A DNA stretch of 64,000 nt from Anthoceros angustus. Lineage: Eukaryota > Plantae > Anthocerotophyta. The notes below the pieces were generated by a model. The model saw nothing but the letters and a program-made list of their open reading frames with translations. It was not told where the DNA came from and did no database searches. The DNA is taken from contig VJWM01000011.1 in the NCBI GenBank assembly GCA_010909165.1, positions 744,001 to 808,000 on the forward strand. The letters are read 5' to 3'. Numbering within the stretch: position 1 is the stretch's first letter; every line of letters begins with the position of its first letter. The position numbers and the translations under genes were made by a program. Shown in pieces: positions 7,168 through 54,842 of this stretch.

Positions 7168-10100
7168 TGGGCTATGGCGGATCCACCTCTTCCTGCCGGC
7201 GCCGCGCTGGTGGACCTGCTCGAGAGCCTCGAGTCCCGCTCGCCGCAGCTGCGTGCGTTGCTTGCAGAGCTGGAGTCCGACTCGCCAAAGCGGCAGGAAC
7301 TGCCATCTTTTGATTCGTGGGGAAGCTACTTCAATTGCGACTGCCAGGACGGGGAATGTCACCACCGCGAGGAGTGGCACTGGGCGGTGCGCTTGCGTCT
7401 GCTCACCGCTATCGGCAGATGCCGTACGCTCAGGAAGATTCAACTGAATCCTCTGTGGAAGAGGGTCACAGCGTGAGGCGGGACGAGGCGTTGGCGCTCT
7501 TTTCAGGCTTGCAACACAACCTTGTGCTGGAGGAGCTGAATCTGTTTGGCTACAAGGGGTTTGGGACGGCAGCAGCGTGCCTCCAGGCACTGAGTGCCGT
7601 CATCGACAGAACTCATCGCTCACTGGACTTCCTCGGTCTGCAATCTGTGGGATTGAGTGCAGAAGGACTGGGTGCCATCGCTGCAGCCCTTGGACGCAAT
7701 GTCAGCTCTTCAGTGCTGTCCAGATTGTCTCTGTGTGGGAACGACATCAGGAATGCTGTCGGGCGCAACACTTGGCCGACATCCTTACCAAGTCGCCCAA
7801 GCTGCGCAATCTCTGGATGAGCAACATAGGCATGGACGAGGAAGGAGCCGTGGTGATTGCACAGGCCCTGGCGCATACCACTACACTGGCTGGGCTTAGA
7901 ATCGGAGATCCTGCGCCCCGGAATCCAAACCGGCCCGCGCCCATGTTCCTCGTTCCATTGCTCCAAGCTTTGGTGTGGCACACCCTGGCGGATCCTCCAG
8001 CTGCTGTTTCTGGCAATCACTCCATCACACGGCTTGTCCTTGAGTGTCCGGGAGGCCAGGAGGCTGTGGAGCCAGGGCTGGGAGAAGCCCTGGCTCAGGT
8101 GCTTGCACCAACCGGGCTGAAAGACCTCAGACTATCCAGCTTCTTCGTCACACGCGGATTGGGAGCTCTGCGGGAAAACAGCAGCATCACCAAACTCCTG
8201 GTGTTTCACTCGCGGCAGTCGGAGGATGATGACATGGATCCCATCCTGACCACCATCCTGGATGAGTGCAAGACTGTTGAGGAGGTGCAGATCCGGTTTG
8301 ACAAGCCCTTTGGTCCGTCCAGCTTCACCAAGGCGTTTTCCAAGGGTTGCTGCAGAAAACCGCAGCATCAACAGGCTGGTGTTGGATGGCTGGGATGGCT
8401 GGACGACGAGATGTTTGAAGACCTGATTCAATCCCTGTCTACCAACACCAACACCCACCTCAGGCTGGATCACATCTCCATCAAGGGCACCTCATGGGAA
8501 AAGCAAGGCAGGGGCGAACGTCTGGAGAAAGCGTTGGGAGCTGCGCGAGTGCAGCCGCAGCTGCGTGCGTTGCTCGCAGACTTGGAGTCCGAGTCGCCAG
8601 TGCTGCAAGAACTCCCATCTGTGGATTTGTGGGAAGCTATTTCGATTGCCTTTGCCAGGAGGCCTACAGGAGTGTCAACACCGGGGCAGTGGCAGTGGTA
8701 CGTACGCCTGCGCCTGCTCACAGCTATCGGCAAATGCCGGTCGCTGAGGAAGATTCATCTGAATCCTCCGGGAGGAGGGCACTTACAGCGTGAGGAGGTA
8801 GAGGCGCTGGCTCTGCTATCAGGCTTGCAACACAACCTTGTGCTGGAGGAGCTGAATCTGTATGGCTACAAGGGGTTTGGGACGGCACCCTGCCTGCAGG
8901 CATTGACTGGCGTCATGGAGAGATGCTATTTCTCATTGGACTTGCTGGTCTGCAACATCTGGGATTGAGTGCAGAAGGACTGGGTGTCATCGCTGCAGCC
9001 CTTGGACGCAACCGCAGCTCAGTGCTGTCCAGATTGTCTCTTTGTGGGAACGACATCGGGAATGCTGTCGGGGCGCAACACTTGGCCGACATCCTTACCA
9101 ACTCGCCCAAGCTCCGCAATCTATGGATGAGCAACATAGGCATGGACGAGGAAGGAGCCGTGGTGATTGCACAGGCCCTGGCGCATACCACTACACTGGC
9201 TGGGCTTAGAATCGGAGATCCTGCGCCCCGGAATCCAAACCAGCCCGCGCCCATGTTCCTCGTTCCATTGCTCCAAGCTTTGGTGTGGCACACCCTGGCG
9301 GATCCTCCAGCTGCTGTTTCTGGCAATCACTCCATCACACGGCTTGTCCTCGAGTGTCCGGGAGGCCAGGAGGCTGTGGAGCCAGGGCTGGGAGAAGCCC
9401 TGGCTCAGGTGCTTCGCACCAACCGGGCTCTGAAAGACCTCACACTATCCAGCTTCTTCGTCACACGCGGATTGGGAGCTCTGCGGGAAAACAGCAGCAT
9501 CACCAAACTCCTGGTGTTCCACTCGCGGCAGTCGGAGGATGATGACATGGATCCCAACCTGACCGCCATCCTGGATGAGTGCAAGACTGTTGAGGAGGTG
9601 CAGATCCGGTTTGACAAGCCCTTTGGTCCGTCCAGCTTCACCAAGGCGTTTTTCAAGGGTTGCTGCAGAAAACCGCAGCATCAACAGGCTGGTGTTGGAT
9701 GGCTGGGATGGGCTGGACGACGAGATGTTTGAAGACCTGATTCAATCCCTGTCCACCAACACCAACACCCACCTCAGGCTGGATCACATCTCCATCAAGG
9801 GCACCTCATGGGAAAAGCAAGGCAGGGGCGAACGTCTGGAGAAAGCGTTGGGAGCTGCGCGAGTGCAGCCGCAGCTGCGTGCGTTGCTCGCAGACTTGGA
9901 GTCCGAGTCGCCAGTGCTGCAAGAACTCCCATCTGTGGATTTGTGGGAAGCTATTTCGATTGCCTTTGCCAGGAGGCCTACAGGGAGTGTCAACACCGGG
10001 GCAGTGGCAGTGGTACGTACGCCTGCGCCTGCTCACAGCTATCGGCAAATGCCGGTCGCTGAGGAAGATTCATCTGAATCCTCCGGGAGGATGGGCACTT

Positions 10101-13100
10101 ACAGCGTGAGGGAGGTAGAGGCGCTGGCGCTGCTATCTGGCTTGCAACACAACCTTGTGCTGGAGGAGCTGAATTTGGCTACGTGGGCTTTGGGACGGCA
10201 CCCTGCCTGCAGGCATTGACTGGCGTCATGGAGATGCTATTTCTCATTGGACTTGCTGGGTCTGCAATATCTGGGATTGAGTGCAGAAGGACTGGGTGTC
10301 ATCGCTGCAGCCCTTGGACGCAACCGCAGCTCAGTGCTGTCCAGATTGTCTCTTTGTGGGAACGACATCGGAATGCTGTCGGGCGCAACATTTGGCCGAC
10401 ATCCTGAGGAATTCGATCGCCCTCCGCAATCTCTGGATGAGCAATATTGGCATGGATGAGGAAGGAGCCGTGCTGATTGCAGAGGCCCTGGCGAATACCA
10501 CCACCTGATCCGTCTCAGAATCGGAGACCCTGCGCCCCGGAATCCGGGCAGCCGGCGCCCATGTTCATTGGTCCAATTCTCGAAGCTTTGGTGTGGCACA
10601 CGCCGGATTCGGAGAATCAGGAGGATTGTCATCCTCTGCTTCTAGAGCCACTTCCAATCGCTCCATCAGGCTGCTTGTTCTTGAGTGCCCAGGAGGCCAG
10701 GAGGCTGTGGAGCCGGGGCTGGGAGAAGCCCTGGCTCGGGTGCTGCGCACCAACCGTGCTCTCACTGACCTCAGACTATCCAGCTTCTTCGTCAGACGCG
10801 GATTGAAAGCGCTACCTGAAAACAGCAGCATCACCCAACTCCAAGTAAGTCACACGCGGGATTCGCAGGATGATGACATGGATCCTATGCTGATCACGAT
10901 CCTTCAGGAGAGCAAGACTATCCAGGAGCTGCAGCTTCAGTTTGACAAGCCCTTTGGTCCATCCAGCTTCTCCAAGGCGTTTTTCCAAGGGTTGGGGGAT
11001 ACTCGTAGCATCAAGACGCTTGTGTTGGATGACTGCCGAGGATTGGATGACGACATGTTCCGGAACTTGATGCGGTCTCTGCGACGCAACTGCAACAACG
11101 TCCTGGAGAATATTTCCATCCAGAAAACAACCTGGGAAAGCGAAGGCAAAGGAATACAGATCCAGAATCTGCTCTCAAGGAACGTGCACAGAAGAAGCGC
11201 TGCTCCGCAGGGTAGGTGCCCCAAGCCAGTAGCTTGCTACCCTTGTCCTGATTTGTATCTACTGTCAGAACCCACGAACCCAGATGTATACTGACCCCTT
11301 CTCACTTGTGCAGGTTCGGAAGGAGTGCCACCACCGGTCACGGCAACTGTGGCAACCTCTGATGCCGCAGCAGGTAATGAAACTACATGAATCCATGGAT
11401 TTGATCCAACCACTTCCAAGCTGTTGTTGTTGTTGCAACTAGTTTGAATGCCTGTACCGAATGCACCACTTGATGCTGCTGCTGGCAGGCAGTCTGATGA
11501 TTGACTGATTGGCTGTTTTGTTTTCACCACAATTTCCAGTTGCTGTTCCTGAGGAGCTCAGTGCCCTGCTTGCCGAGCTCGACTCACCTTCGCCCACACT
11601 CAGTAGTCTTCCTCGTGTGAAAGCGTTTGGGCACCTGTTCAAGAGGGACGTGGAACATCCACAGGTGGAACTTGAACTGCGCATGCGCCTTGTGAAGGCT
11701 ATCGGAAAATGCCCCACACTCAGATTCATAGATCTCGACCCTCTTGGGCGTCGAAAGTACAGGGTGACGGTGGCAGAGGCGATGGCGCTGCTACAAGGCC
11801 TGAGCTCGAATGCAATAGTGGAACGGCTGGACTTGAGTGGCTTCCTTGGTTTTGGAACAGGTGAAGTCTGCGCTGCAATCGCCGCTATCTTGCAATCCAG
11901 CCGCACCTTGCAATCTCTGAATATGGGATACACTGGCATGACTGTCGAAGGACTGGCATTGCCCTATGCTGCGACATAATCGCAGCACTGTGCTTCGCAC
12001 CTTGTATCTTTCTGGAAACACGACTGTGGGAGAAGGTGTTGGAGCTCAACACCTGGCTGATATCCTGACCAGCACTCCCGCTCTTCGCAACCTGGGGATG
12101 TGGGATACAGGGATGGATGAGGCGGGAGCATTGATGATAGGGGATGCTCTGGCTCAGAACACCACACTTGACTGGCTGAACATAGGATTCAATCAAGCGT
12201 GGAGGCCAAAGCAGGCAGGGATGATGGCCACGCTGTTAGCTCGAGCATTCACCCTGGCATGCTGGACGCAGACCAGGAGGCTGAAGGTGTTGCTCCCAAG
12301 CTTCCTTCTGTTAACGAGTCTGTCACACATCTCCAGCTGGAAGTATGGGGAGCAGGACAGCAGCCTGTCATCGCTGAGTTGGGAGAAGCTGTGGCCCGCA
12401 TGCTGCGGTCGAACATGACTTTAAGGCATCTCGATGTATGTAGCTGCTTTATAAGCCAGGGATTGGAGGGGCTGTGTGACAACAGCAGCGTTATCCGTGT
12501 GACAGTCCGACATGGTAGCTCTAGTGCTAAGGAGGACTACTGCAAGCTGATGCCAATCCTGCAGAGGTGCCAGACAGTGGAAAGTTTAGAATTATATCAG
12601 GACAGTTTGGGACCTTTGGGATCATCCGACCTCCCGAAGACGTTTTTCAAATCGTTGCAGGACAATCGTTACCTCAACAGGTTGGTGTTGGATGACTGGA
12701 AAGGGTTGGACGACAATATGTTCCAAGACTTGTTGCGGGCTCTGCAAGTGAACACCAATTTGAAAAGGATATCGTTCGAGAACACTGTGTGGAAAAGTCA
12801 GGGAAAAGGAGCTGCAGTGGATGAACTACTACGCCAAAACAGGGAATACCGGAAAGCTCTGGCAGGGGCTCCAACAATGCCAGTGAAATCATGTCGCCTC
12901 ATACTTTGTGGATTTCCATATGCAGGTGAGCCACATGCTGAACCCAAAGTTTGTACATCCCCAAATGGCGTAGTTTGTGTCAGACTTCACTGCAGTTGTT
13001 TCTGTCTTCTCTACAGCTGTTTTCTTGTCTTAACGTTGTTTTCGTCTCCGGAGTGTAATCGGTGGTAAATGTTGCTGTTTCAGGGAAAACCACGATACGG

Positions 13101-15924
13101 AATACGTTGATGAGCATGCAAACACACGAAAACGATCTTGAGATCGAGGGTGAAACGATTTTGAAGCACATACCTCGAACCCTTGGGTTTGAGGTTGAGG
13201 TGATAAAAGATGGTCCAGCCTTGAGAATTACCGTTTGGGATCTTGCAGGGCACCGGGAGTTTCATGCTCTTCACGATTTTGTCTTTCCTGCTGTGAATAA
13301 CTCTTCTCTCTTCTTGTTTGTCTATAACCCGTTCAAATTTGGTGGTAATTATTCAAGTGCGGAAATGAAGGATAGAAAGGATTTTCGAGATGAATTTATA
13401 TATTGGCTTAAATTTATTGCTTCCAACTCGCGGTTAGCTCAACAGGTGAAACCTTATGTGCATGTGGTGGTAACATTTGGTGACAAGCTTGAAGGTAGGA
13501 TGTCTTCGTTGCACGGAGGAAGTGTTGGTGATGAAGAAAAGTTCATGGCTGTTGTGGAAACATCCAATGAACCCACTTTCATCAATGGACAGAGTTGGAA
13601 AGATGTGTATGCACTCGCAGCCTTATAGAGGAAAAGCTACGCCAGCTTGTCAATAAAATTGGCCCCAATTCCCAATATTTGTGAGCAGACCCGTATACAT
13701 GTGCAAAGATGGGCTGAGGATCAACAAGGTATGCCAATCATTTCTGTTGAGAAGTTTAGTGAGTTGTTTCATAGCACATGTAAGGCGGCAATAGGGCATC
13801 CACTCATCTCGAGGATTACAAATTTCTTAGAGACTTCATGGACAAAGAGGATAGCTGGAAAGTAGTAGCATCATATCTCAAGGATTCGGGAGATCATATA
13901 TTTCCAAATGTCACGACTTATGGTCATCAACCTCCGATGGTTAGGAATGGGCGTTTTGGTCAGCTGATTAGTATATTTGGTGAACGGACAATAGGCAAGA
14001 TTGGCTTCAAGTTCAAAATGGGTTCATCAGCAAATATGGGTTGAGTAGCCTTCTAAAATGTCTTTGAACAAGGTAGGGCTTGATGAAACCATTGTGAGCG
14101 AGGAACAATTCATCCAATTGATGCTTGAGTTACACCTTTGCACGAAAGTAGAGATGAGGAAGGAGAAGTGCGTTATTTTGTTCCAATATGTATGTATAAA
14201 GAAGATGGATCGAGTTGACCAGTTAGTATGGCCTTCACGGTGGTAATCTTCATGATTATATCTTTATGGGTTTGCGTCTACAATGTGATGATCAAGATTG
14301 TACATTCCTCACACCAGGATTTTTCCCTAGGTTACAGGTTTGTAACTTTTCTCAAGCTCACTATCTTTTGTTTTATGTCCTTGAAACTTCTTCTTTTGTT
14401 TATTATTATTATTACTGTTAACTAGTCTCATTGTTCCTATATATTGTAGGTACTTTTATACACATATTGTTTGACAAAAGGCTGGGTTGATGAGGAAAGA
14501 CCAATTGATTCAGAATAAAATTGGAGCCTAATGTCCTTTTAATATCTGCAGAGGCATTGGATATCTTTGTGGAATTTAATGCCAAATCGGTTGCTACATA
14601 GATATATTGGCCCGATCTACTCAAGGCTATTTAGAGTCCATGTCATTTTGAAGGAACATATTGTATCTCGATTCGGGCATTTTGTGCTTCGTATGAGGGT
14701 TGTGCAGGTTACATTGGTTGAAGGTGTTCTTGACATGAATGTGTGGCATCCCTCACTCTATGCGACATAGGAGACACGAGTGTATCCAGATAAGCTAGTC
14801 AAAGCGGTGGCTGCTGCAAAGGACCGATGCTATGCTCACTACGCATCTTGGAGAGCTATCTTGATGCGGCAGCTCTCACTCATTTTAAAGGCCAACATAG
14901 AGTATGCAACCGTGGTGGATGGTCATGTCATTTTGGGACAAAAGAGGACCTTGCAGCCGAGAGTTCCAAGGTTGAAGCTCTCAATCCTGTGAATAGTCTG
15001 TTTTTTGCTAGGTGTCCTCATTCTGCACATGTAGTTTTCAGTAGCATTACACAAGTAGGCCTTTCTTGCAAACTCGAGGTGCATATTGCAGGATCAAAAT
15101 CCACCAGCAGAGAAGCTGCTGAAACTTCTACATCCAAGTAGTGCAAGTGCGAAAGAAGAACTATTGTTGGGAGTACTTATCCTAACCATGGTGTGGAAGG
15201 AGGAAAGCAGAGGTTTGGCAATGATTGTGAGTATGGAAGGACTGGAGGAGCAGGCGGAGGGCGACTTGAAGCTCTTTTTGAGACTTTGGCGTTTGATACT
15301 GATATATTAGTGGATGGTTCTGAGAATGTGAAAGCACGATTGAGGAGCGTTGCCAAACTCCCTACCCTAGCTAAGGACGATTGCTTTCTATGTTGCATCA
15401 ATGCTCATGGGGGGATTGAAGAAGATGGCAGACAGTACATTCTCACAAGCGGAGCACGGCGGGAGAAGCTATATGTTGATGATGACATCTTGAAGCCCAT
15501 CTCGAATCCACGTGGTTGAGACAAGCCCAAGGTGTTTTGATCAATGCTTGTCGAGGCCGTAGCCTTATCACAAGCGAGAAGCTAAGGACTCTAAGTTGAG
15601 AGTAGCCAAATGTGAGCAAGAGAGCCGGAGAAGTCCGACTCCTGCACTCTGTGAAGGATTGTCTCATCTTCTTCTCGACCCGGTCATGGACAACAATCCT
15701 TTAGAGATGTTGAGAAAGGCACAAACTTTATCACAGCTTTGATGAAAGCCATCATTCGGGGTCTCGAAGAAGGGATGATGTGTCTGACATTTTAACATCG
15801 ATGATTGCCGAGGTCACGGAGATAGAAGTCAAGCTCCCAAGTGAAGCGAAGGCGCCCGAGAAGAGATCCCAATGTCGAGTTGTATTCCACACTCACAAGA
15901 AAGCTTTGCTGGTCTTTACCATAA
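7168..15924 (+). CDS. TORNADO1-like LRR-Roc-COR (ROCO) protein with a C-terminal caspase-like (peptidase C14, p20+p10) domain; multi-exon, with several apparent frameshifts
   Basis: ATG at 7168 (MADPPLPAG...). RI-type LRRs. Predicted introns: 11212-11313, 11374-11539, 12926-13083 (splits the P-loop GFPYAG|KT), 14339-14449 (after TPGFFPRLQ) and ~14990-15091. The Roc motif WDLAGHREFHALHDF matches the TRN1 family. The last exon carries caspase motifs; stop at 15922-15924. Confidence 0.8.
7230..12860 (+). repeat. Four tandem ~1.32-kb (~440 aa) copies of an entire LRR domain
   Basis: The motif QLRALLA(E/D)LES recurs at ~7245, ~8557 and ~9871, and a diverged ELSALLAELDS at ~11555. Modules end with a conserved SW(E/K)xxGxG motif. 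Confidence 0.9.
12890..14990 (+). other. Roc GTPase and COR domains of the ROCO gene
   Basis: G1 motif LILCGFPYAG|KTT, G2-like RTLG, G3-like WDLAGHREFHAL, and TPGFFPRLQ|V, all TRN1-family motifs. Confidence 0.85.
15205..15924 (+). other. Caspase-like protease domain (catalytic His codon 15406-15408, Cys codon 15549-15551)
   Basis: Across frames: ESRGLAMIVS; LEALFETLAF; DDCFLCCINAHGG; DKPKVF(L)INACRG; VKDCLIFFST..GQQSFRDVEKGTNFITALMKAI; STLTRKLCW. All are collinear with the caspase p20/p10 consensus. Confidence 0.85.
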
Positions 15925-17096
15925 GTTCACTCACTTGGCCAACGGGAGTTCGGTATGGCCATGGTCCTTCATCCGTAACTGTAATAGAGTCATCGTTCCC
16001 AACAAGACACTATTGGTGCAGCTCTAATGTGGCCTTCTCTTTTGTCCTTTTCTGTTCATTTCTTGTTCAGTGGCTCGCATACAATTTGGAGGAGAAACGA
16101 CTCCTTCTGTGGATGAACCTGTAGGCAAGAGCTTATGGACTTTAGGGAGGAAAGAACAAGGGAGTTGTGGAGCTGTAGTTGTACTCTTTGGTTTCAAGAA
16201 GCAAGTCCGGATGTAAGCGTTCCTCGATCGAATGACTTCTAGTCCTTTTGCATACTAGATGTGTGTCCATCTTCCTGAGCGGCCCAGGCGTTTGAGGCTT
16301 GCCTTTCTTTCACGATGAGAAAACACAAAGCGCGGACAGTACCTCACAGTAGCTGGTGCCAAACCCTCACCTCCAGTGTTAGAGCTACGATATTTTCGCT
16401 GTTGAAATGTGGATTAGGTTACTTTTCATGAATCACCGACAGCACAAACATGTATGTAAGTTTGTGTTGTCCTTCCGGTTGTACCAGTGACCAATCCATG
16501 TAATCTCTCTGACTGCAAGGAAAAGTGCGCTATATTCTGCCTCTGTTGAGGAGAGGCTGATCGTCGAAAGCTTTTTGCTTTGCCAACTAGTAGCTGATCC
16601 ACATAAAAGTGTGCGATGTCGCTATCGACTTCCTCATCAACATCGCCAACTCCTTAAAACAGTGAGGTTGAAATTACTTGCCTTGGTATATGTTAGACAT
16701 AAATGTCTAGTGCCTTTCAATTAGCGTAGGATTCGCTTAACGGTTGACCCAATGGCGCTTCTGTGGTTGACAGAAACGTGAAACAATGCCTGTAGCTTGT
16801 GAAATATCAGGCCTTGTCCAGCCAGCGAGGTAAAGTAAACTGCCCACAACTTCTCGATAAGGGACAACGCCATTTTGCCTTGTCTAAATTACATCAAGTC
16901 CTCGAGTGATAGCTTCTCACCCGGACCATCGGGTGGCTACTCAATTAATACCTTGCAGGTTGAATTTAGATAAAATCGGCCAGATGAAATGCTCTTGATG
17001 TAATGTGATCCTGCTGTAAGGTCGAAGAAGAACTGAATGCCCAATGCGAACGAAGAGGGCCTACATCATCATATCCCACTCTTCAAGAGCCGCTGA

Positions 17097-17420
17097 CTTT
17101 CGTGAAGGATTGTCTCATCTTCTTCTCGACCATCATGGACAACAATCCTTTAGAGATGTTGAGAAAGGCACAAACTTTATCACAGCTTTGATGAAAGCCA
17201 TCATTCGGGGTCTCGAAGAAGGGATGATGTACATTTTAACATCGATGATTGCCGAGGTCACGGAGATAGAAGTCAAGCTCCCAAGTGAAGAAGGAAGGCG
17301 CCCGAGAAGAGATCCCAATGTCGAGTTGTACTCCACACTCACAAAAAGCTTTGCTGGTCTTTACCATAAGTTCACTCACTTGGCCAACGGAGTTGTGGCC
17401 ATGTTCCTTCATCCGTAATC
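17097..17420 (+). pseudogene. Duplicated caspase p10 fragment (copy 2)
   Basis: Near-identical to 15650-15924 (GQQSFRDVEKGTNFITALMKAII...ELYSTLT); joined to copia RT sequence on its 5' side. Confidence 0.85.
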
Positions 17421-18632
17421 GTAATAGAATCATCGTTCCCAACAAGACATTGTTGGTGCAGCTTCTAATGCGGCCTTCTCATTTGTCCTTTTCTCATTTC
17501 TTGTTCGGTGGCTCGCATACAATTTGGAGAAAACAACTCCTTCGTGGATGAACTCAGGTGAGAGCTCATGGACTTTAGGGAGGAAAGAACAAGGGAGTTG
17601 TGGAGCTGTAGTTGTACTCTTTGGTTTCAAGAAGCAAGTCCGGATGTAAGCGTTCCTCGGATCAAATGACTTCTAGTCCTTTTGCATACTAGATGTGTGT
17701 CCATCTTCCTGAGCGGCCCAGGCGTTTGAGGCTTGCCTTTCTTTCACGATGAGAAAACACAAAGCGGATAAGACTTCACGAGTGGTGCCAAACCCTCACC
17801 TCCAGTGTTAGAGCTACGATATTTTCGCTGTTGAAATGTGGATTAGGTTACTTTTCATGAATCACCGACAAAGACAAACATGTATGTAAGTTTGTGTTGT
17901 CCTTCCGGTTGTACCAAAGGACCAATCCATGTAATCTCTCCGCAAGGAAAAGTGCGCTATATTCTCGCCTCATGAGGAGAGGTCGATCGTCAAAGCTTTT
18001 TGCTTTGCCAACTAGTAGTCGATCCACATAAAAGTGTGCGATGTCGCTATCGACTTCCTCATCAACATCGCCAAATCTTAAAAAGTGAGGTTGAAATTAC
18101 TTGCCTTGGTATATGTTAGACATAAATGTCTAGTGCCTTTCAATTAGCGTAGGATTCGCTTAACTGACCCAATGGCGCTTCTGTGGTTGGACAGAAACGT
18201 GAAACAATGCCCGTAGCTTGTGAAATATCAGCCTTGTCCAATGAGAGGTAAAGTAAGCGCCCACAACTTCGATAAGGGACAACGCCATTTTGCCTTGTCT
18301 AAATTACATCAAGTCCTCGAGTGATAGCTTCTCACCGGCTGCAACTGGGGTGGCTACTCAATTAATACCTTGCAGGTTGAATTTAGATAAAATCTGACGA
18401 ATGAAATGCTCTTGATGTAATGTGACAGATCCTGCTGTAAGGTCGAAGAAGAACTGAATGCCCAATGCGAAACGAAGAGGGCCTACATCTGTCATATCCC
18501 ACTCTTCGAAGAGCTGCTGCTTGACTTCTGTAAGGATTTCGTTGTCGCTTGCAAAAATGAAATTATCATCAATGTAAAGGGCAATAATGCATAGCTGGTT
18601 GTTCTTGCACAGATATAAATCGCTATCGGCGG

Positions 18633-19089
18633 AGAAGCTATATGTTGATGATGACATCTTGAAGCCCATCTCGAATCCGTGGTTGAGACAAGCCCAAGGT
18701 GTTTTGATCAATGCTTGTCGAGGCCGTAGCCTTATCACAAGCGAGAAGCTAAGGACTCTAAGTTGAGAGTAGCCAAATGTGAGCAAGAGAGCCGGAGAAG
18801 TCCGACTCACATTCGTGAAGGATTGTCTCATCTTCTTCTCGACGGTCATGGACAACAATCCTTTAGAGATGTTGAGAAAGGCACAAACTTTATCAGCTTT
18901 GATGAAAGCCATCATTCGGGGTCTCGAAGAAGGGATGATGTGTACAGCATTTTAACATCAGTGATTGCCGAGGTCACGGAGATAGAAGTCAAGCTCCCGA
19001 GTGAAGCAGGAAGGCGCTCTGAGAAGAGATCCCAATGTCCCGAGTTGTATTCCACACTCACAAGAAAGCTTTGCTGGTCTTTACCATAA
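18633..19089 (+). pseudogene. Duplicated partial caspase domain (copy 3: post-His p20 including NACRG, plus p10)
   Basis: Begins at EKLYVDDDILKP and carries aatgcttgtcgaggc (NACRG) and ELYSTLTRKLCWSLP*. It lacks the His-containing segment. Confidence 0.85.
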
Positions 19090-19614
19090 GTTCACTCACT
19101 TGGCCAACGGGAGTTCGGTATGGCCATGGTCCTTCATCCGTAATAGAATCATCGTTCCCAACAAGACATTGTTGGTGCAGCTTCTAATGCGGCCTTCTCA
19201 TTTGTCCTTTTCTCATTTCTTGTTGTGGCTCGCATACAATTTGGAGGAGAAAACAACTCCTTCGTGGATGAACACAGAGAGCTCATGGACTTTAGGGAGG
19301 AAAGAACAAGGGAGTTGTGGAGCTGGTGTACTCTTTGGTTTCAAGAAGCAAGTCCGGATGTAAGCGTTCCTCGATCGAATGACTTCTAGTCCTTTTGCAT
19401 ATTAGATGTGTGTCCATCTTCCCGAGCGCCCGTTTGAGGCTTGCCTTTCTTTCACGATGAGAAAACACAAAGCGCGGACAGTACCTCACAGTAGCTGGTG
19501 CCAAACCCTCACCTCCAGTGTTAGAGCTATGACATTTTATTGAAATGTGGATTAGGTTACTTTTCATGAATCACCGACAGCACAAACATGTATGTAAGTT
19601 TGTGTTGTCCTTCC

Positions 19615-20940
19615 GGTTGTACCAGTGACCAATCCATGTAATCTCTCTGACTGCAAGGAAAAGTGCGCTATATTCTCGCCTCATGAGGAGGCGATCGTCA
19701 GCTTTTTGCTTTGCCAACTAGTAGCTGATCCACATAAAAGTGTGCAGTATGCTGCTATCGACTTCCTGCTGTCAACATCGCCAGCCCAGTCAGCGTCTTA
19801 AAAACAGGTGAGGTTGAAATTACTTGCCTTGGTATATGTTAGACATAAATGTCTAGTGCCTTTCAATTAGCGTAGGATTCGTTTAACAGTGACCCAATGG
19901 CGTTTTCCAGGGTTGGACAGGAAACGTGAAACAATGCCTGTAGCTTGTGAAATATCAGGCCTTGTCCAGCCAGCGAGGTAAAGTAAACTGCCCACAACTT
20001 CTCGATAAGGGACAACTGCCATTTTTGCCTTGTCTAAATCTGTTACTGGGCAGTCCTCGAGTGATAGCTTCTCACCGGCTGCAACTGGGGTGGCTACTCA
20101 ATTAATACCTTGCAGGTTGAATTTAGATAAAATCGGCCAGATGAAATGCTCTTGATGTAATGTGACGGATCCTGCTGTAAGGTCGAAGAAGAATGCCCAA
20201 TGCGAACGAAGAGGGCCTACATCATCATATCCCACTCTTTCAACATGACCTGTAAGGATTTCGTTGTCGCTTGCAAAAATGAAATTATCATCAATGTAAA
20301 GGGCAATAATGCATAGCTGGTTGTTCTTGCACAGGATATAAATACTGCTATCGGCAGTAAGGGGCTCAAAACCTAAAACACGAAGCTTTGCATCTGCTCT
20401 TCCATTCCAGATGCGTGCAGACTGTTTCAGTCCATACAGCGACTTTATAAGCTCACATACCAGGTCAGGATCTAATACATAACCCTGTGGCTGCTGCATG
20501 TAGATTGTTTATTCTAGAGGCCCATTTAGAAATGCTGCTTTTACGTCCATCTGATGGACGATGAGTTTATGCTGAACAGCGAAACATAACAGAATTCTCA
20601 TTGATGTCAGCTTGACTACGGGGCTAAATGTCTCGTTATAATCGGGGCCTTGAACTTGGGTGTAGCCCCGTGCTACAAGGCGGGCCTTATATCTAGCAAC
20701 AGACCCATCAGGATGAAGCTTAAGTTTAAATACCCATTTTGAGGTAATAGCTTTCGATCCTGCAGCAATTTGACTAGCTTCCATGTGGTTATCTATCAAA
20801 GATTGGTACTCACTATCAATGGCTTGATCTACCGTTTGGGGTGAACTAAGAGCTTCCGAAATGTCATAGGCGATCAAGAGGTCTGTAATGGTAAGAGCAA
20901 TGTCGAGCCATCTCGCTAGACTACCTCGCACATTATGCAA
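19615..20940 (-). pseudogene. Copia reverse transcriptase/RNase H (frameshifted)
   Basis: KWVFKLK...ARYKARLVARGYTQVQGPDYNETFSPVVK...HQMDVKAAFLNG; KSLYGLKQSARIW; LYIDDNFI. Confidence 0.9.
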
Positions 20941-53008: not shown

Positions 53009-54842
53009 ATGAGATCATCTGGCATGGCAGGGAGGCGGCCCTCGCTGCTCCTCCTGCTGGCCCTAGGCCTGCTGCTGCCGAGCGTGGCGCTGGCCGCGGA
53101 ATTGTTCCAGGAGCTCAGGCTGGTGGCAGACGCGAGAGGGAGGCACTTGGCGGTGGAGGAGGAGGAGGATCGGGAAGGCCTGGAGGGGACGCTGACGCTG
53201 AGTCTGACGCATCGAGATCACCCGGACTCCCCCTTCAGCTCCGGCAGCGGCAGCGATGCGCTGCGGGAGCGGCTGGAGCGGGACCGGAGGCGGGTGGAGG
53301 GGATCATGTCCCGCGTGGACAACATGGTGAGCTTGCAGGCAGGCGGCTACGGCGGTGATCGAGACCCGGCCGGGAAGAAGACCAAGAAGGAGAAGAAGAA
53401 GCACAAGAGGAAGCACGCGGTGGAGTACAGGAAGTCTTCCGCCGGGGGCAATGTCGGGTTCGAGGGCGCCGTGGTGTCAGGCTTGTCTGCCGGGAGCGGG
53501 GAGTACTTCGTCACGCTGGGCATCGGCACGCCGCAGGCCAAGACAGCCTTGGTGATGGACACAGGGAGCGACGTGCTCTGGCTCCAGTGCGCTCCTTGCC
53601 GGGTAAAATCAATCAATCCCCGCCTCTGCCATAGCCACTCTCCTTCTGCCATAGGTTTGGTGCAGCAATTGGTGCGGTGAGAGTGTAGGTCCTGAAATTA
53701 TCCGATCTGGCTGCTGCTGCTGCTCCACAGGATTGCTACAACCAGAACGGGGCCATCTTCCAGCCGAAGCAATCCGGGTCGTACCGCACGCTCTCGTGCG
53801 GCTCCAAGCAGTGCCAGCTGGTGGACGAGCGCAGCTGCGCCAAGAACGTGTGCCTGTACGAGGTGAACTACGGGGACGGGAGCTTCACGGTCGGCGATTT
53901 CTCCACCGAGACGCTCACCCTGACGGCCAAGGGAGGCAAGGAGTTCCTGGTGAAGAACGTGGCATTCGGGTGCGGGCATGACAACGAGGGCCTCTTCGTG
54001 GGAGCCGCGGGCCTGCTCGGGCTGGGCCGGGGCGCGCTCTCCTTCCCGTCGCAGGTAGGCTGGATCGTGGGCAACGTCTTCTCCTACTGCCTGGTGGACC
54101 GGGAGAGCCTCGGCTCCAGCTCCCTCTCCTTCGGCCAGTCTGCCATCCCGCAAGGTGAGTCCCATCGTCCATCCGCCTTTCTCCTCTTCAGCCGGACTCC
54201 TCTTCGGCAACTGATCGAAGTTGCTTCGCTCGTCATCATCAACAAGCGCGGCCATGGCCGCCGCAATTCCTGCCCAGCCCAGGGCCTGCCTGATGTGGGA
54301 TAATCCATGGTGCATTTGCAGGCGCGCTCTTCACGCCACTCCTCACCAACCCCAAGGTGAAGACGTTCTACTACGTGGGGCTGGTGGGAATCAGCGTGGG
54401 CAAGGTCCAGGTGCCCGTCCCCGCCGCCTCCTTCGCCCTCTCCGCTTCCGGGACGGGAGGCGTCATCATCGACTCGGGGACGTCCGTCACCCGGCTGCCG
54501 TCCGCCGCCTACACCGCCGTGCGCAACCAGTTCGTGAAGATGGCGGCCGCCGACCTGGGCCAGCCCTCCCTCTCCTTCTCCCTCTTCGACACCTGCTACG
54601 ACCTCGGGCAGCGGCAGAGCGTGCAGGTCCCCGTGCTCAGCCTGCTCTTCCAGGGCGGCGTGGAGGTGCCGCTCCCCGCCCGGAACTACATGGTGCAGGT
54701 GGATGCCCAGGGCACCGTCTGCTTCGCCTTCGCCCCCACCACCGGCCCGCTCTCCATCATCGGCAACATCCAGCAGATGAGCATCCGAATAGTGCACGAT
54801 GTGGCGGGATCCCGCCTCGGCTTCGCCCCATCCCAATGCTAG
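53009..54842 (+). CDS. A1 aspartic protease (nepenthesin/ASPG1-like), 3 exons (53009-53602, 53731-54154, 54322-54842)
   Basis: Signal peptide; VVSGLSAGSGEYFVTLGIGTP; catalytic motifs VMDTGSDVLW and IIDSGTSVT; IIGNIQQ; canonical splice sites. Confidence 0.95.

Follow-up and report, generated by a model that had tools for sequence, protein, structure and literature searches.

A probable caspase-type protease domain at the C-terminal end of a Roc-containing gene in the hornwort Anthoceros angustus

The protease domain and its gene

We analyzed a stretch of 64,000 nucleotides from the hornwort Anthoceros angustus (assembly GCA_010909165.1, contig VJWM01000011.1, positions 744,001 to 808,000 of the forward strand), hereafter called the window, with all coordinates counted from its first base. 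A sequence-only reading of this DNA had pointed out a caspase-type catalytic domain and proposed that it lies in a plant gene. Our analysis indicates that a large gene of a land plant probably has its C-terminal protease domain at positions 15172-15921 of the + strand; in this gene, leucine-rich repeats are followed by a Roc GTPase domain, a linker and the protease.

The leucine-rich repeated sensor region extends over about 5.6 kb (7317..12922, +) as a chain of overlapping open reading frames (ORFs) in different frames. It was assigned from its visible repeat pattern, as the Pfam leucine-rich repeat (LRR) models gave only E 0.067. Within this region, modules of several hundred residues recur near-verbatim (for example, 7577-8968 and 8923-10219). 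Contig 9 of RNA run X2 extends to 12922 and then splices on, and a 980-nt RNA contig carries the joint from 12922 to 13081, which defines a GT..AG intron of 158 nt (12923..13080, +). The Roc-type GTPase domain follows at 13081..13628 (+); it matches Pfam Roc (PF08477) with E 1.1e-6 and 29.3 bits against a cut-off of 27, and the nearest Atlas clusters of this region are Roc and Roc-COR proteins. The RNA-supported intron interrupts the Roc P-loop, between ..LILCGFPYAG and SGKTT... The linker between Roc and the protease (13629..15171, +), presumed to be COR, contains many frame changes and a second intron at about 14336-14447, whose GT..AG joint from 14335 to 14448 is found in RNA. The N-terminal part of a transcript from another hornwort matches 14647-14709 weakly. 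RNA depth is unbroken from 12500 to 16385 with the two introns spliced, and RNA contigs extend from the Roc exon beyond the protease stop; no single contig spans the whole region. A TAXi_N/TAXi_C aspartyl protease gene (53009-54842, +), an intact Harbinger-type transposase (DDE_Tnp_4/Plant_tran; 43978-45372, -) and pieces of copia gag and reverse transcriptase are also present in the window. These neighbors show that the protease domain resides in a plant genome, and the proposed location in a plant gene is likewise upheld by the RNA contigs and their GT..AG introns.

The motifs quoted in the sequence-only reading (INAHG, KPKVF(L)INACRG, DCLIFFST..GQQSFRD..GTNFI and STLTRKL) are all present on the + strand where that reading had placed them, and the motifs of the protease domain were confirmed throughout 15172-15921, distributed over three frames. 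The N-terminal part of the domain contains RGLAMIVSME (15209-15238) and GRTGG (15235-15249), in which R-T-G occupies 15238-15246 and its Arg codon 15238..15240. CCINAHGG follows at 15391-15414, with the catalytic His codon at 15406-15408. The Cys motif (15520..15557) consists of DKPKVF (15520-15537) and, after a one-base frame change at about 15538, INACRG (15540-15557); here the Asn codon (15543-15545) stands at the position of the caspase Gln, and the catalytic Cys codon is 15549-15551. The linker between the large and small subunits (15563..15628) reads PYHKREAKDSKL.. in the third frame. The small subunit starts at 15657..15741 with DCLIFFST (15657-15680) and continues, after a frame change at 15682, as HGQQSFRD..GTNFITAL, in which GQQSFRD occupies 15688-15708 (Arg codon 15703-15705) and GTNFITAL 15718-15741. 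Its remaining part (15759..15921) reads ..DDVSDILTSMIAEV.. and ELYSTLTRKLCW, the frame changing at 15757 and again at about 15870; it contains ELYSTLTRKL (15877-15906), and the stop codon follows at 15922-15924.

Single pieces of this domain gave little signal by themselves: Pfam showed weak C14 matches (E 0.004 and 0.17), and the p20 piece alone matched caspases in the PDB at E about 0.07. These matches are too weak to stand alone, and therefore we used intact relatives, described below, as a guide and joined the domain pieces with an X at each break. The best homology-guided reading has ten frame changes, near 15190, 15236, 15510, 15519, 15538, 15561, 15629, 15682, 15757 and 15870, and no in-frame stops. 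A first joining scored 173 bits against a hidden Markov model (HMM) of the intact relatives, and 200 shuffles of it reached at most 1.5 bits; reading the subunit linker in the third frame raised the score to 189 bits (E 5e-60). In addition, tblastn with the intact relatives against the protease stretch gave E-values down to 5e-13. An intron in the subunit linker was considered as an explanation for two frame-0 stops and rejected, since no RNA joint occurs there and the third-frame reading matches the linker of relative P0006.

Intact relatives and the class of the protease

A HMMER scan with the p20 piece returned nine proteins, seven of which are clear relatives at 31-45% identity. Two are transcripts of the hornwort Nothoceros aenigmaticus, and the others come from Logan assemblies and Joint Genome Institute (JGI) metagenomes. 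Further searches enlarged the set to about 25. The relatives read GKPKVFFINACRG, CFVSAHG, VVFSTEEGNxSxR..GTYFVQAL and S.LT.KLYW in a single frame. Because the intact relatives carry the Cys motif in one frame, KPKVF(L)INACRG, which in the window spans a one-base shift, had been joined correctly and represents the ancestral reading. On metagenome contigs, the domain exon ends in AG followed by GTAAGT, and about 320 nt further on a CAG acceptor precedes an NB-ARC-LRR exon. This spliced junction identifies the caspase-type domain as the N-terminal domain of eukaryotic immune-receptor genes of the NLR type (nucleotide-binding, with leucine-rich repeats); examples are L002:1855-12643, from a contig of a eukaryote, and contigs L003 and L004. 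A further caspase-type exon on these contigs has an alpha/beta-hydrolase-like ORF behind it and, after that, another NB-ARC-LRR.

Other searches were less productive. A word-indexed protein search with the window p20 piece gave no matches in its length range, no relatives were found on plasmids, and no NCBIfam or PADLOC model scored above threshold for the protease family (the best NCBIfam match had E 0.01 and 15 bits against a cut-off of 140). Among the species genomes of bacteria and archaea, the only relative found was a distant bacterial locus at 23% identity, and relatives from a metagenome scan showed 23-38% identity, with their origin unassigned. From these results, neither a bacterial nor an animal donor can be named. 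The bacterial locus, in a genome bin of Verrucomicrobia, is a lone caspase-like ORF of 217 residues (L005:5980-6633) that has KIPKIFFIQACRR and is without the first strand and the first S1 Arg.

Metacaspases are, to our knowledge, the one group of C14 proteases that has been reported from plants. They have an acidic S1 pocket and cleave after Arg or Lys. The comparisons of class were made by profile and structure on the intact relatives, not on the broken window copy. A profile of 17 relatives matched caspase-6 best among solved structures (E 3.5e-33, profile positions 18-263, covering p20 and p10), and its best 60 matches were all animal caspases. The profile alignment paired eRxGaavDR with ERRGTCADR, sAhG with SHG, GkPKvffinaCrg with GKPKIFIIQACRG, egnesaRspedGtyFvqaL with EGYYSHRETVNGSWYIQDL and skLtkklyW with SMLTKKLHF. 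In protein-language-model features, 80 of the 100 nearest Atlas clusters were animal caspase clusters. We also obtained an AlphaFold model of relative P0007 (predicted local distance difference test, pLDDT, 87). Its top Foldseek matches in the PDB and Swiss-Prot were caspases only, with E 1e-18 to 1e-20, and metacaspases were absent from its best 30 Swiss-Prot structure matches. VIA-align, a structure search independent of Foldseek, gave Z-scores of 27.3 for caspase-9, 27.0 for caspase-3 (4pry) and 26.5 for caspase-8 (4jj7), compared with 21.9 for the paracaspase MALT1, 20.8 for c-FLIP, 18.4 for metacaspase 4 and 17.1 for metacaspase 9 of Arabidopsis, 14.5 for yeast Yca1 and 12.1 for Trypanosoma MCA2. 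The identity of P0007 was 26-28% to caspases versus 13-15% to metacaspases. These profile and model-based comparisons support assignment of the plant family to the caspase type (C14A-like), as the sequence-only reading had proposed, and give no support to a metacaspase or paracaspase type.

The family resembles animal caspases (MEROPS C14A; caspase-6, -3, -7, -8, -9 and -2) in the order p20, linker and p10, in the fold, in the His/Cys dyad and in both S1 arginines, and shares with them RxGxxxD, (S/A)HG, GKPK.F.I.ACRG, S.R...G..F.Q.L and S.LT.KL. However, it is only 21-28% identical to them, has Asn for the Gln of QACRG and is without a CARD, DED or pyrin prodomain; also unlike animal caspases, its domain lies C-terminal to leucine-rich repeats and Roc, or N-terminal to NB-ARC-LRR. 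Plant metacaspases (C14B; Arabidopsis MC4, 6w8r, and MC9, 8a53) have the same clan CD fold and His/Cys dyad, but differ in their weaker structural fit and low identity, and in that the pocket positions of the family are Arg/Arg. MALT1 likewise contains a caspase-like domain (15% identity) within a signaling protein that is activated by assembly, although it has death and Ig domains where the plant gene has repeats and Roc. MALT1 is Arg-specific and has an acidic pocket. The repeats followed by a Roc GTPase recall the Roco proteins (LRRK2, DAPK1 and plant TORNADO1), whereas the output of the plant gene is a caspase-type protease instead of a kinase or nothing, and COR was not detected by any model.

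At the level of single residues, INAHG and INACRG of the window copy, which lie in different frames of the assembly, align to LLSHG and IQACRG of caspase-2. The two arginines that had been suggested to line the S1 pocket were also found at the expected places: in the alignments, the Arg of R-T-G is paired with the first caspase S1 arginine (R of RxGxxxD) and that of SFRD with the second. All members that keep the dyad, and likewise the window copy, have the Arg of RxG, the His and Asn-Ala-Cys-Arg-Gly, and those with a small subunit also have the Arg of SxR; caspases have Arg, His, Gln-Ala-Cys-Arg-Gly and Arg at these positions. The hornwort transcript P0010 ends before the second S1 Arg. Eight members (P0005, P0018 and P0021-P0026), forming a clade with support of 100/100, have Tyr for the catalytic His and have also lost the second S1 Arg, and P0009 has Gly for the catalytic Cys. 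This subgroup and P0009 are likely to be pseudo-proteases. The joint loss of the His and the second Arg suggests that these residues are under functional retention where the dyad is kept. The two S1 arginines would confer a preference for Asp at P1, if they act as they do in caspases.

Condition of the window copy and alternative explanations

Several observations weigh against a working caspase-type protease at this position. The window copy cannot be translated as assembled, owing to its ten frame changes; over the protease domain, ORFs do not exceed 125 codons when counted from stop to stop, and pieces of 13629-14989, where frame changes are numerous, gave no Pfam match. In the whole plant family, Asn takes the place of the third S1 residue, the Gln of QACRG, a change that could widen the pocket and perhaps admit Glu, and the Asp of RxGxxxD is Gly in the window copy. 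The sequence-only reading had called the domain canonical and its small subunit complete. The first description fits the caspase type, but not a copy with this substitution that is untranslatable as assembled; the second holds once the breaks are read across, but in the assembly the subunit lies in four separate pieces. A tree had been suggested as a check on the class. The tree that we calculated included the fetched sequences and was without metacaspase, paracaspase and most caspase references; it resolved the eight-member subgroup, but left the deep branches, including that between the plant family and animal caspases, unresolved. The class assignment therefore rests on the profile and structure scores.

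Three further caspase-type copies are found nearby, all of them fragments without the first half of the large subunit. Partial copy 2 (17102..17829, +), comprising the 3' part of the domain and its 3' flank, and partial copy 3 (18627..19538, +), which runs from ..KLYVDDDILKPISNP.. onward, are both 93% identical, and an older small-subunit remnant (33481..34050, +) is 71% identical. The region 15457-20239 consists of a tandem triplicate unit with 89-93% identity. It joins the domain's 3' part to about 480 nt of 3' flank and to a copia fragment (16380-17095), and the units start near 15457, 17102 and 18627. This may be either a real segmental triplication or an artefact of long-read assembly. 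Two of the frame changes in the subunit linker and the change in the Cys motif are common to the copy at 18.6 kb. Compared with the copies at 18.6 kb and 33.5 kb, two bases are absent at about 15868, and the copy at 17.1 kb has a 2-base gap in common with the window copy. These shared breaks, which count against an intact gene, fit inherited mutations as well as systematic errors. The ratio of nonsynonymous to synonymous substitution rates (dN/dS) between the copies is 0.4-0.8, which points in the same unfavorable direction; it was calculated from few sites in an uncertain alignment and was not relied on.

Read contigs from two public runs of the same organism bear on the origin of the breaks. 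Contigs with 0-1 substitutions carry additional bases relative to the window, namely 9 in 195, 8 in 158, 5 in 278, 4 in 114 and 1 in 201, as expected if the consensus is prone to deletions. At 15682, the main RNA contig has one base fewer, which restores the frame to give ..FFSTRHGQQSFRD.., and an A inserted after 15757 in RNA contigs restores it to give ..KAIIQGSRRRDDVSDILTSM... The read tables list 12 of 76 indel sites. At four of these 12 (13810, 14669, 14763 and 15757), the window has CG where RNA has CAG, a difference that looks systematic and may reflect base-calling loss at methylated CHG sites. On the other side, the frame-restoring RNA contigs carry about 2% substitutions relative to the window, so that they may derive from a paralogue. 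A run labelled as DNA, which covers both introns, supports the window at 15682, where 0 of a depth of 66 is changed, and also at 13810, 13819, 14669, 14706 and 14939. Only 15% of the exact 31-mers of 15160-15930 are contained in the runs; therefore, they neither confirm nor correct most of this stretch. There are no nonsense codons in about 250 codons despite the ten frame changes, and the key residues are retained. Most of the frame breaks are probably assembly errors of a deletion-prone long-read consensus; otherwise, the copy would be a pseudogene of recent origin that is still transcribed and belongs to an expressed family. On balance, we lean slightly towards a gene that is less broken than the assembly suggests.

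The most serious alternative is that the window copy is a true pseudogene, in which real mutations have accumulated in a decaying and functionless duplicate of an expressed Roco-caspase family, and we give this a little less than an even chance. Ten frame changes within 750 bases, some of them shared with the nearby partial copies, are what such decay would produce. Furthermore, the DNA-labelled contigs side with the window at the six positions named above, dN/dS between the copies is 0.4-0.8, and the locus is rich in copia pieces, contains three truncated copies and has a repeat region in overlapping frames. Nevertheless, natural decay would usually be expected to bring in several-fold more substitutions than indels, and with them some stops, and here about 250 codons are free of stops and all catalytic and pocket residues are retained. 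The extra bases of substitution-free contigs, up to 9 per 195, are the signature of consensus deletions, and short-read runs that hold so few of the exact 31-mers of the domain cannot vouch for the assembled sequence. It is also conceivable, but improbable, that the domain serves as a non-catalytic scaffold for recruitment or oligomerization, like the pseudo-protease c-FLIP. The family does include members without the catalytic His or Cys, and the protease-like domain of c-FLIP fits the P0007 model at Z 20.8. However, the window copy, its nearest relative P0006 and the dyad-keeping subgroup retain His, Cys and both S1 arginines (apart from P0010, which breaks off before the second), and the joint loss of several residues in the dead subgroup argues for selection where they are kept.

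The two remaining alternatives concern the kind of protease and its source, and we consider both to be very improbable, the second slightly more so. One is that the domain is a relative of metacaspases or paracaspases that cuts after Arg or Lys. Plants are known to hold metacaspases (PMC9104976, PMC12521494), and Pfam uses a single model for all C14 proteases; yet the best profile matches are caspases without exception, the structural fit (Z 27 against 17-18) and the identity both favor caspases, the S1 positions are Arg/Arg instead of acidic, and the Cys motif is INACRG and not DxCHSG. The other is that the stretch is foreign, namely an animal contaminant or a very recent transfer outside any plant gene. 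The nearest named relatives outside the family are indeed animal caspases, but at only 21-28% identity. Moreover, a Roc exon precedes the domain, both are covered by RNA contigs from this organism, plant genes and plant transposons surround it, and relatives occur in a hornwort transcriptome and fused to NB-ARC-LRR by splicing.

A gasdermin-like neighbor and a possible signaling route

A bacterial-type gasdermin-like gene is located at 36003..36854 (-), with a frame change near 36225. Its part at 36228-36854 (-) matches the PADLOC model bGSDM with E 7.8e-8, and the Atlas neighbors of this ORF at 36 kb belong to the Bact_GSDM and Gasdermin families; no Pfam match was obtained for it. Beyond this change, 36050-36223 encodes a tail in the next frame, with ..SRMQPDGPGD.., that ends in ..AFRGWKCRYEHGLLRNYIPSRMQPDGPGDAAPEPSAGQQEEAHATPHG before the stop. 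An Asp-Gly site lies 23 residues before this stop, in the region in which bacterial gasdermins are cleaved. The remnant of a second gasdermin-type gene (33008-33469, -; bGSDM, E 0.014) abuts, head to head, the small-subunit remnant of a second caspase-type domain at 33481-34050 (+). The gasdermin gene lies 20 kb from the protease gene of the window, and nested copia elements occur in the interval. No gasdermin was found adjoining the caspase-NLR genes on the metagenome contigs; two unnamed ORFs adjoining these genes on L002 were considered as candidates and proved not to be gasdermins.

Based on these features, we propose a hypothetical route that links the protease to the gasdermin. A ligand would be sensed by the repeats, and assembly would then take place through the Roc-linker module. 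Caspase domains would thereby be brought together and, like caspase-8, caspase-9 and caspase-1, be activated by their proximity. Once active, the protease would cut after an acidic residue, namely Asp or possibly Glu, and a candidate substrate is the gasdermin-like protein encoded 20 kb away, whose short tail follows the Asp-Gly site. Its release would lead to pores and cell death. With its sensor-linked protease gene near a gasdermin-type gene with a short tail, the locus resembles gasdermin systems that a linked protease switches on, such as bacterial bGSDM operons, fungal HET-Q1/HET-Q2 (PMC8851545) and the animal inflammasome-caspase-1-GSDMD pathway. It differs from them in the 20 kb between its genes, and the caspase family matched no PADLOC defense model. 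Transcription of the protease family is observed in the RNA contigs. The wider proposal, that hornworts and the other plants represented on environmental contigs have a pyroptosis-like pathway in which Roco or NLR receptors cut a bacterial-type gasdermin with a caspase-type protease of their own, is tentative, and we regard it as rather unlikely.

According to their abstracts, two papers state that plants lack caspases and have metacaspases only (PMC9104976, PMC12521494). Our literature searches, for which most subscription journals were outside reach, turned up no report of a plant gasdermin or of a caspase-type domain in a plant, and neither a survey of the N-terminal domains of plant NLRs nor one of plant domain combinations mentions a caspase-type domain. 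The sole paper found with both TORNADO1 and caspase is a general review of Roc domains in which the word caspase occurs once (PMC4104024).

Unrelated proteases have been held responsible for the 'caspase-like' activities long measured in plant cells that are dying. The picture of plants as organisms without caspases would change with a plant family that has the caspase fold, the dyad and a basic S1 pocket, and the more so because this family is tied directly to receptor modules and adjoins a gasdermin-type gene. If the proposed pathway is real, then sensor-caspase-gasdermin signaling is not confined to animals, fungi and bacteria. Such a family would also offer a plant lineage's candidate, open to direct testing, for proteolysis after Asp and for cell death by pore formation, and a new data point on the age of the caspase-gasdermin pairing. 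The window copy, being broken or badly assembled, adds little by itself; the value lies in the family and the locus.

The window also encodes a PI-PLC X-domain protein at 39007-40008 on the - strand.

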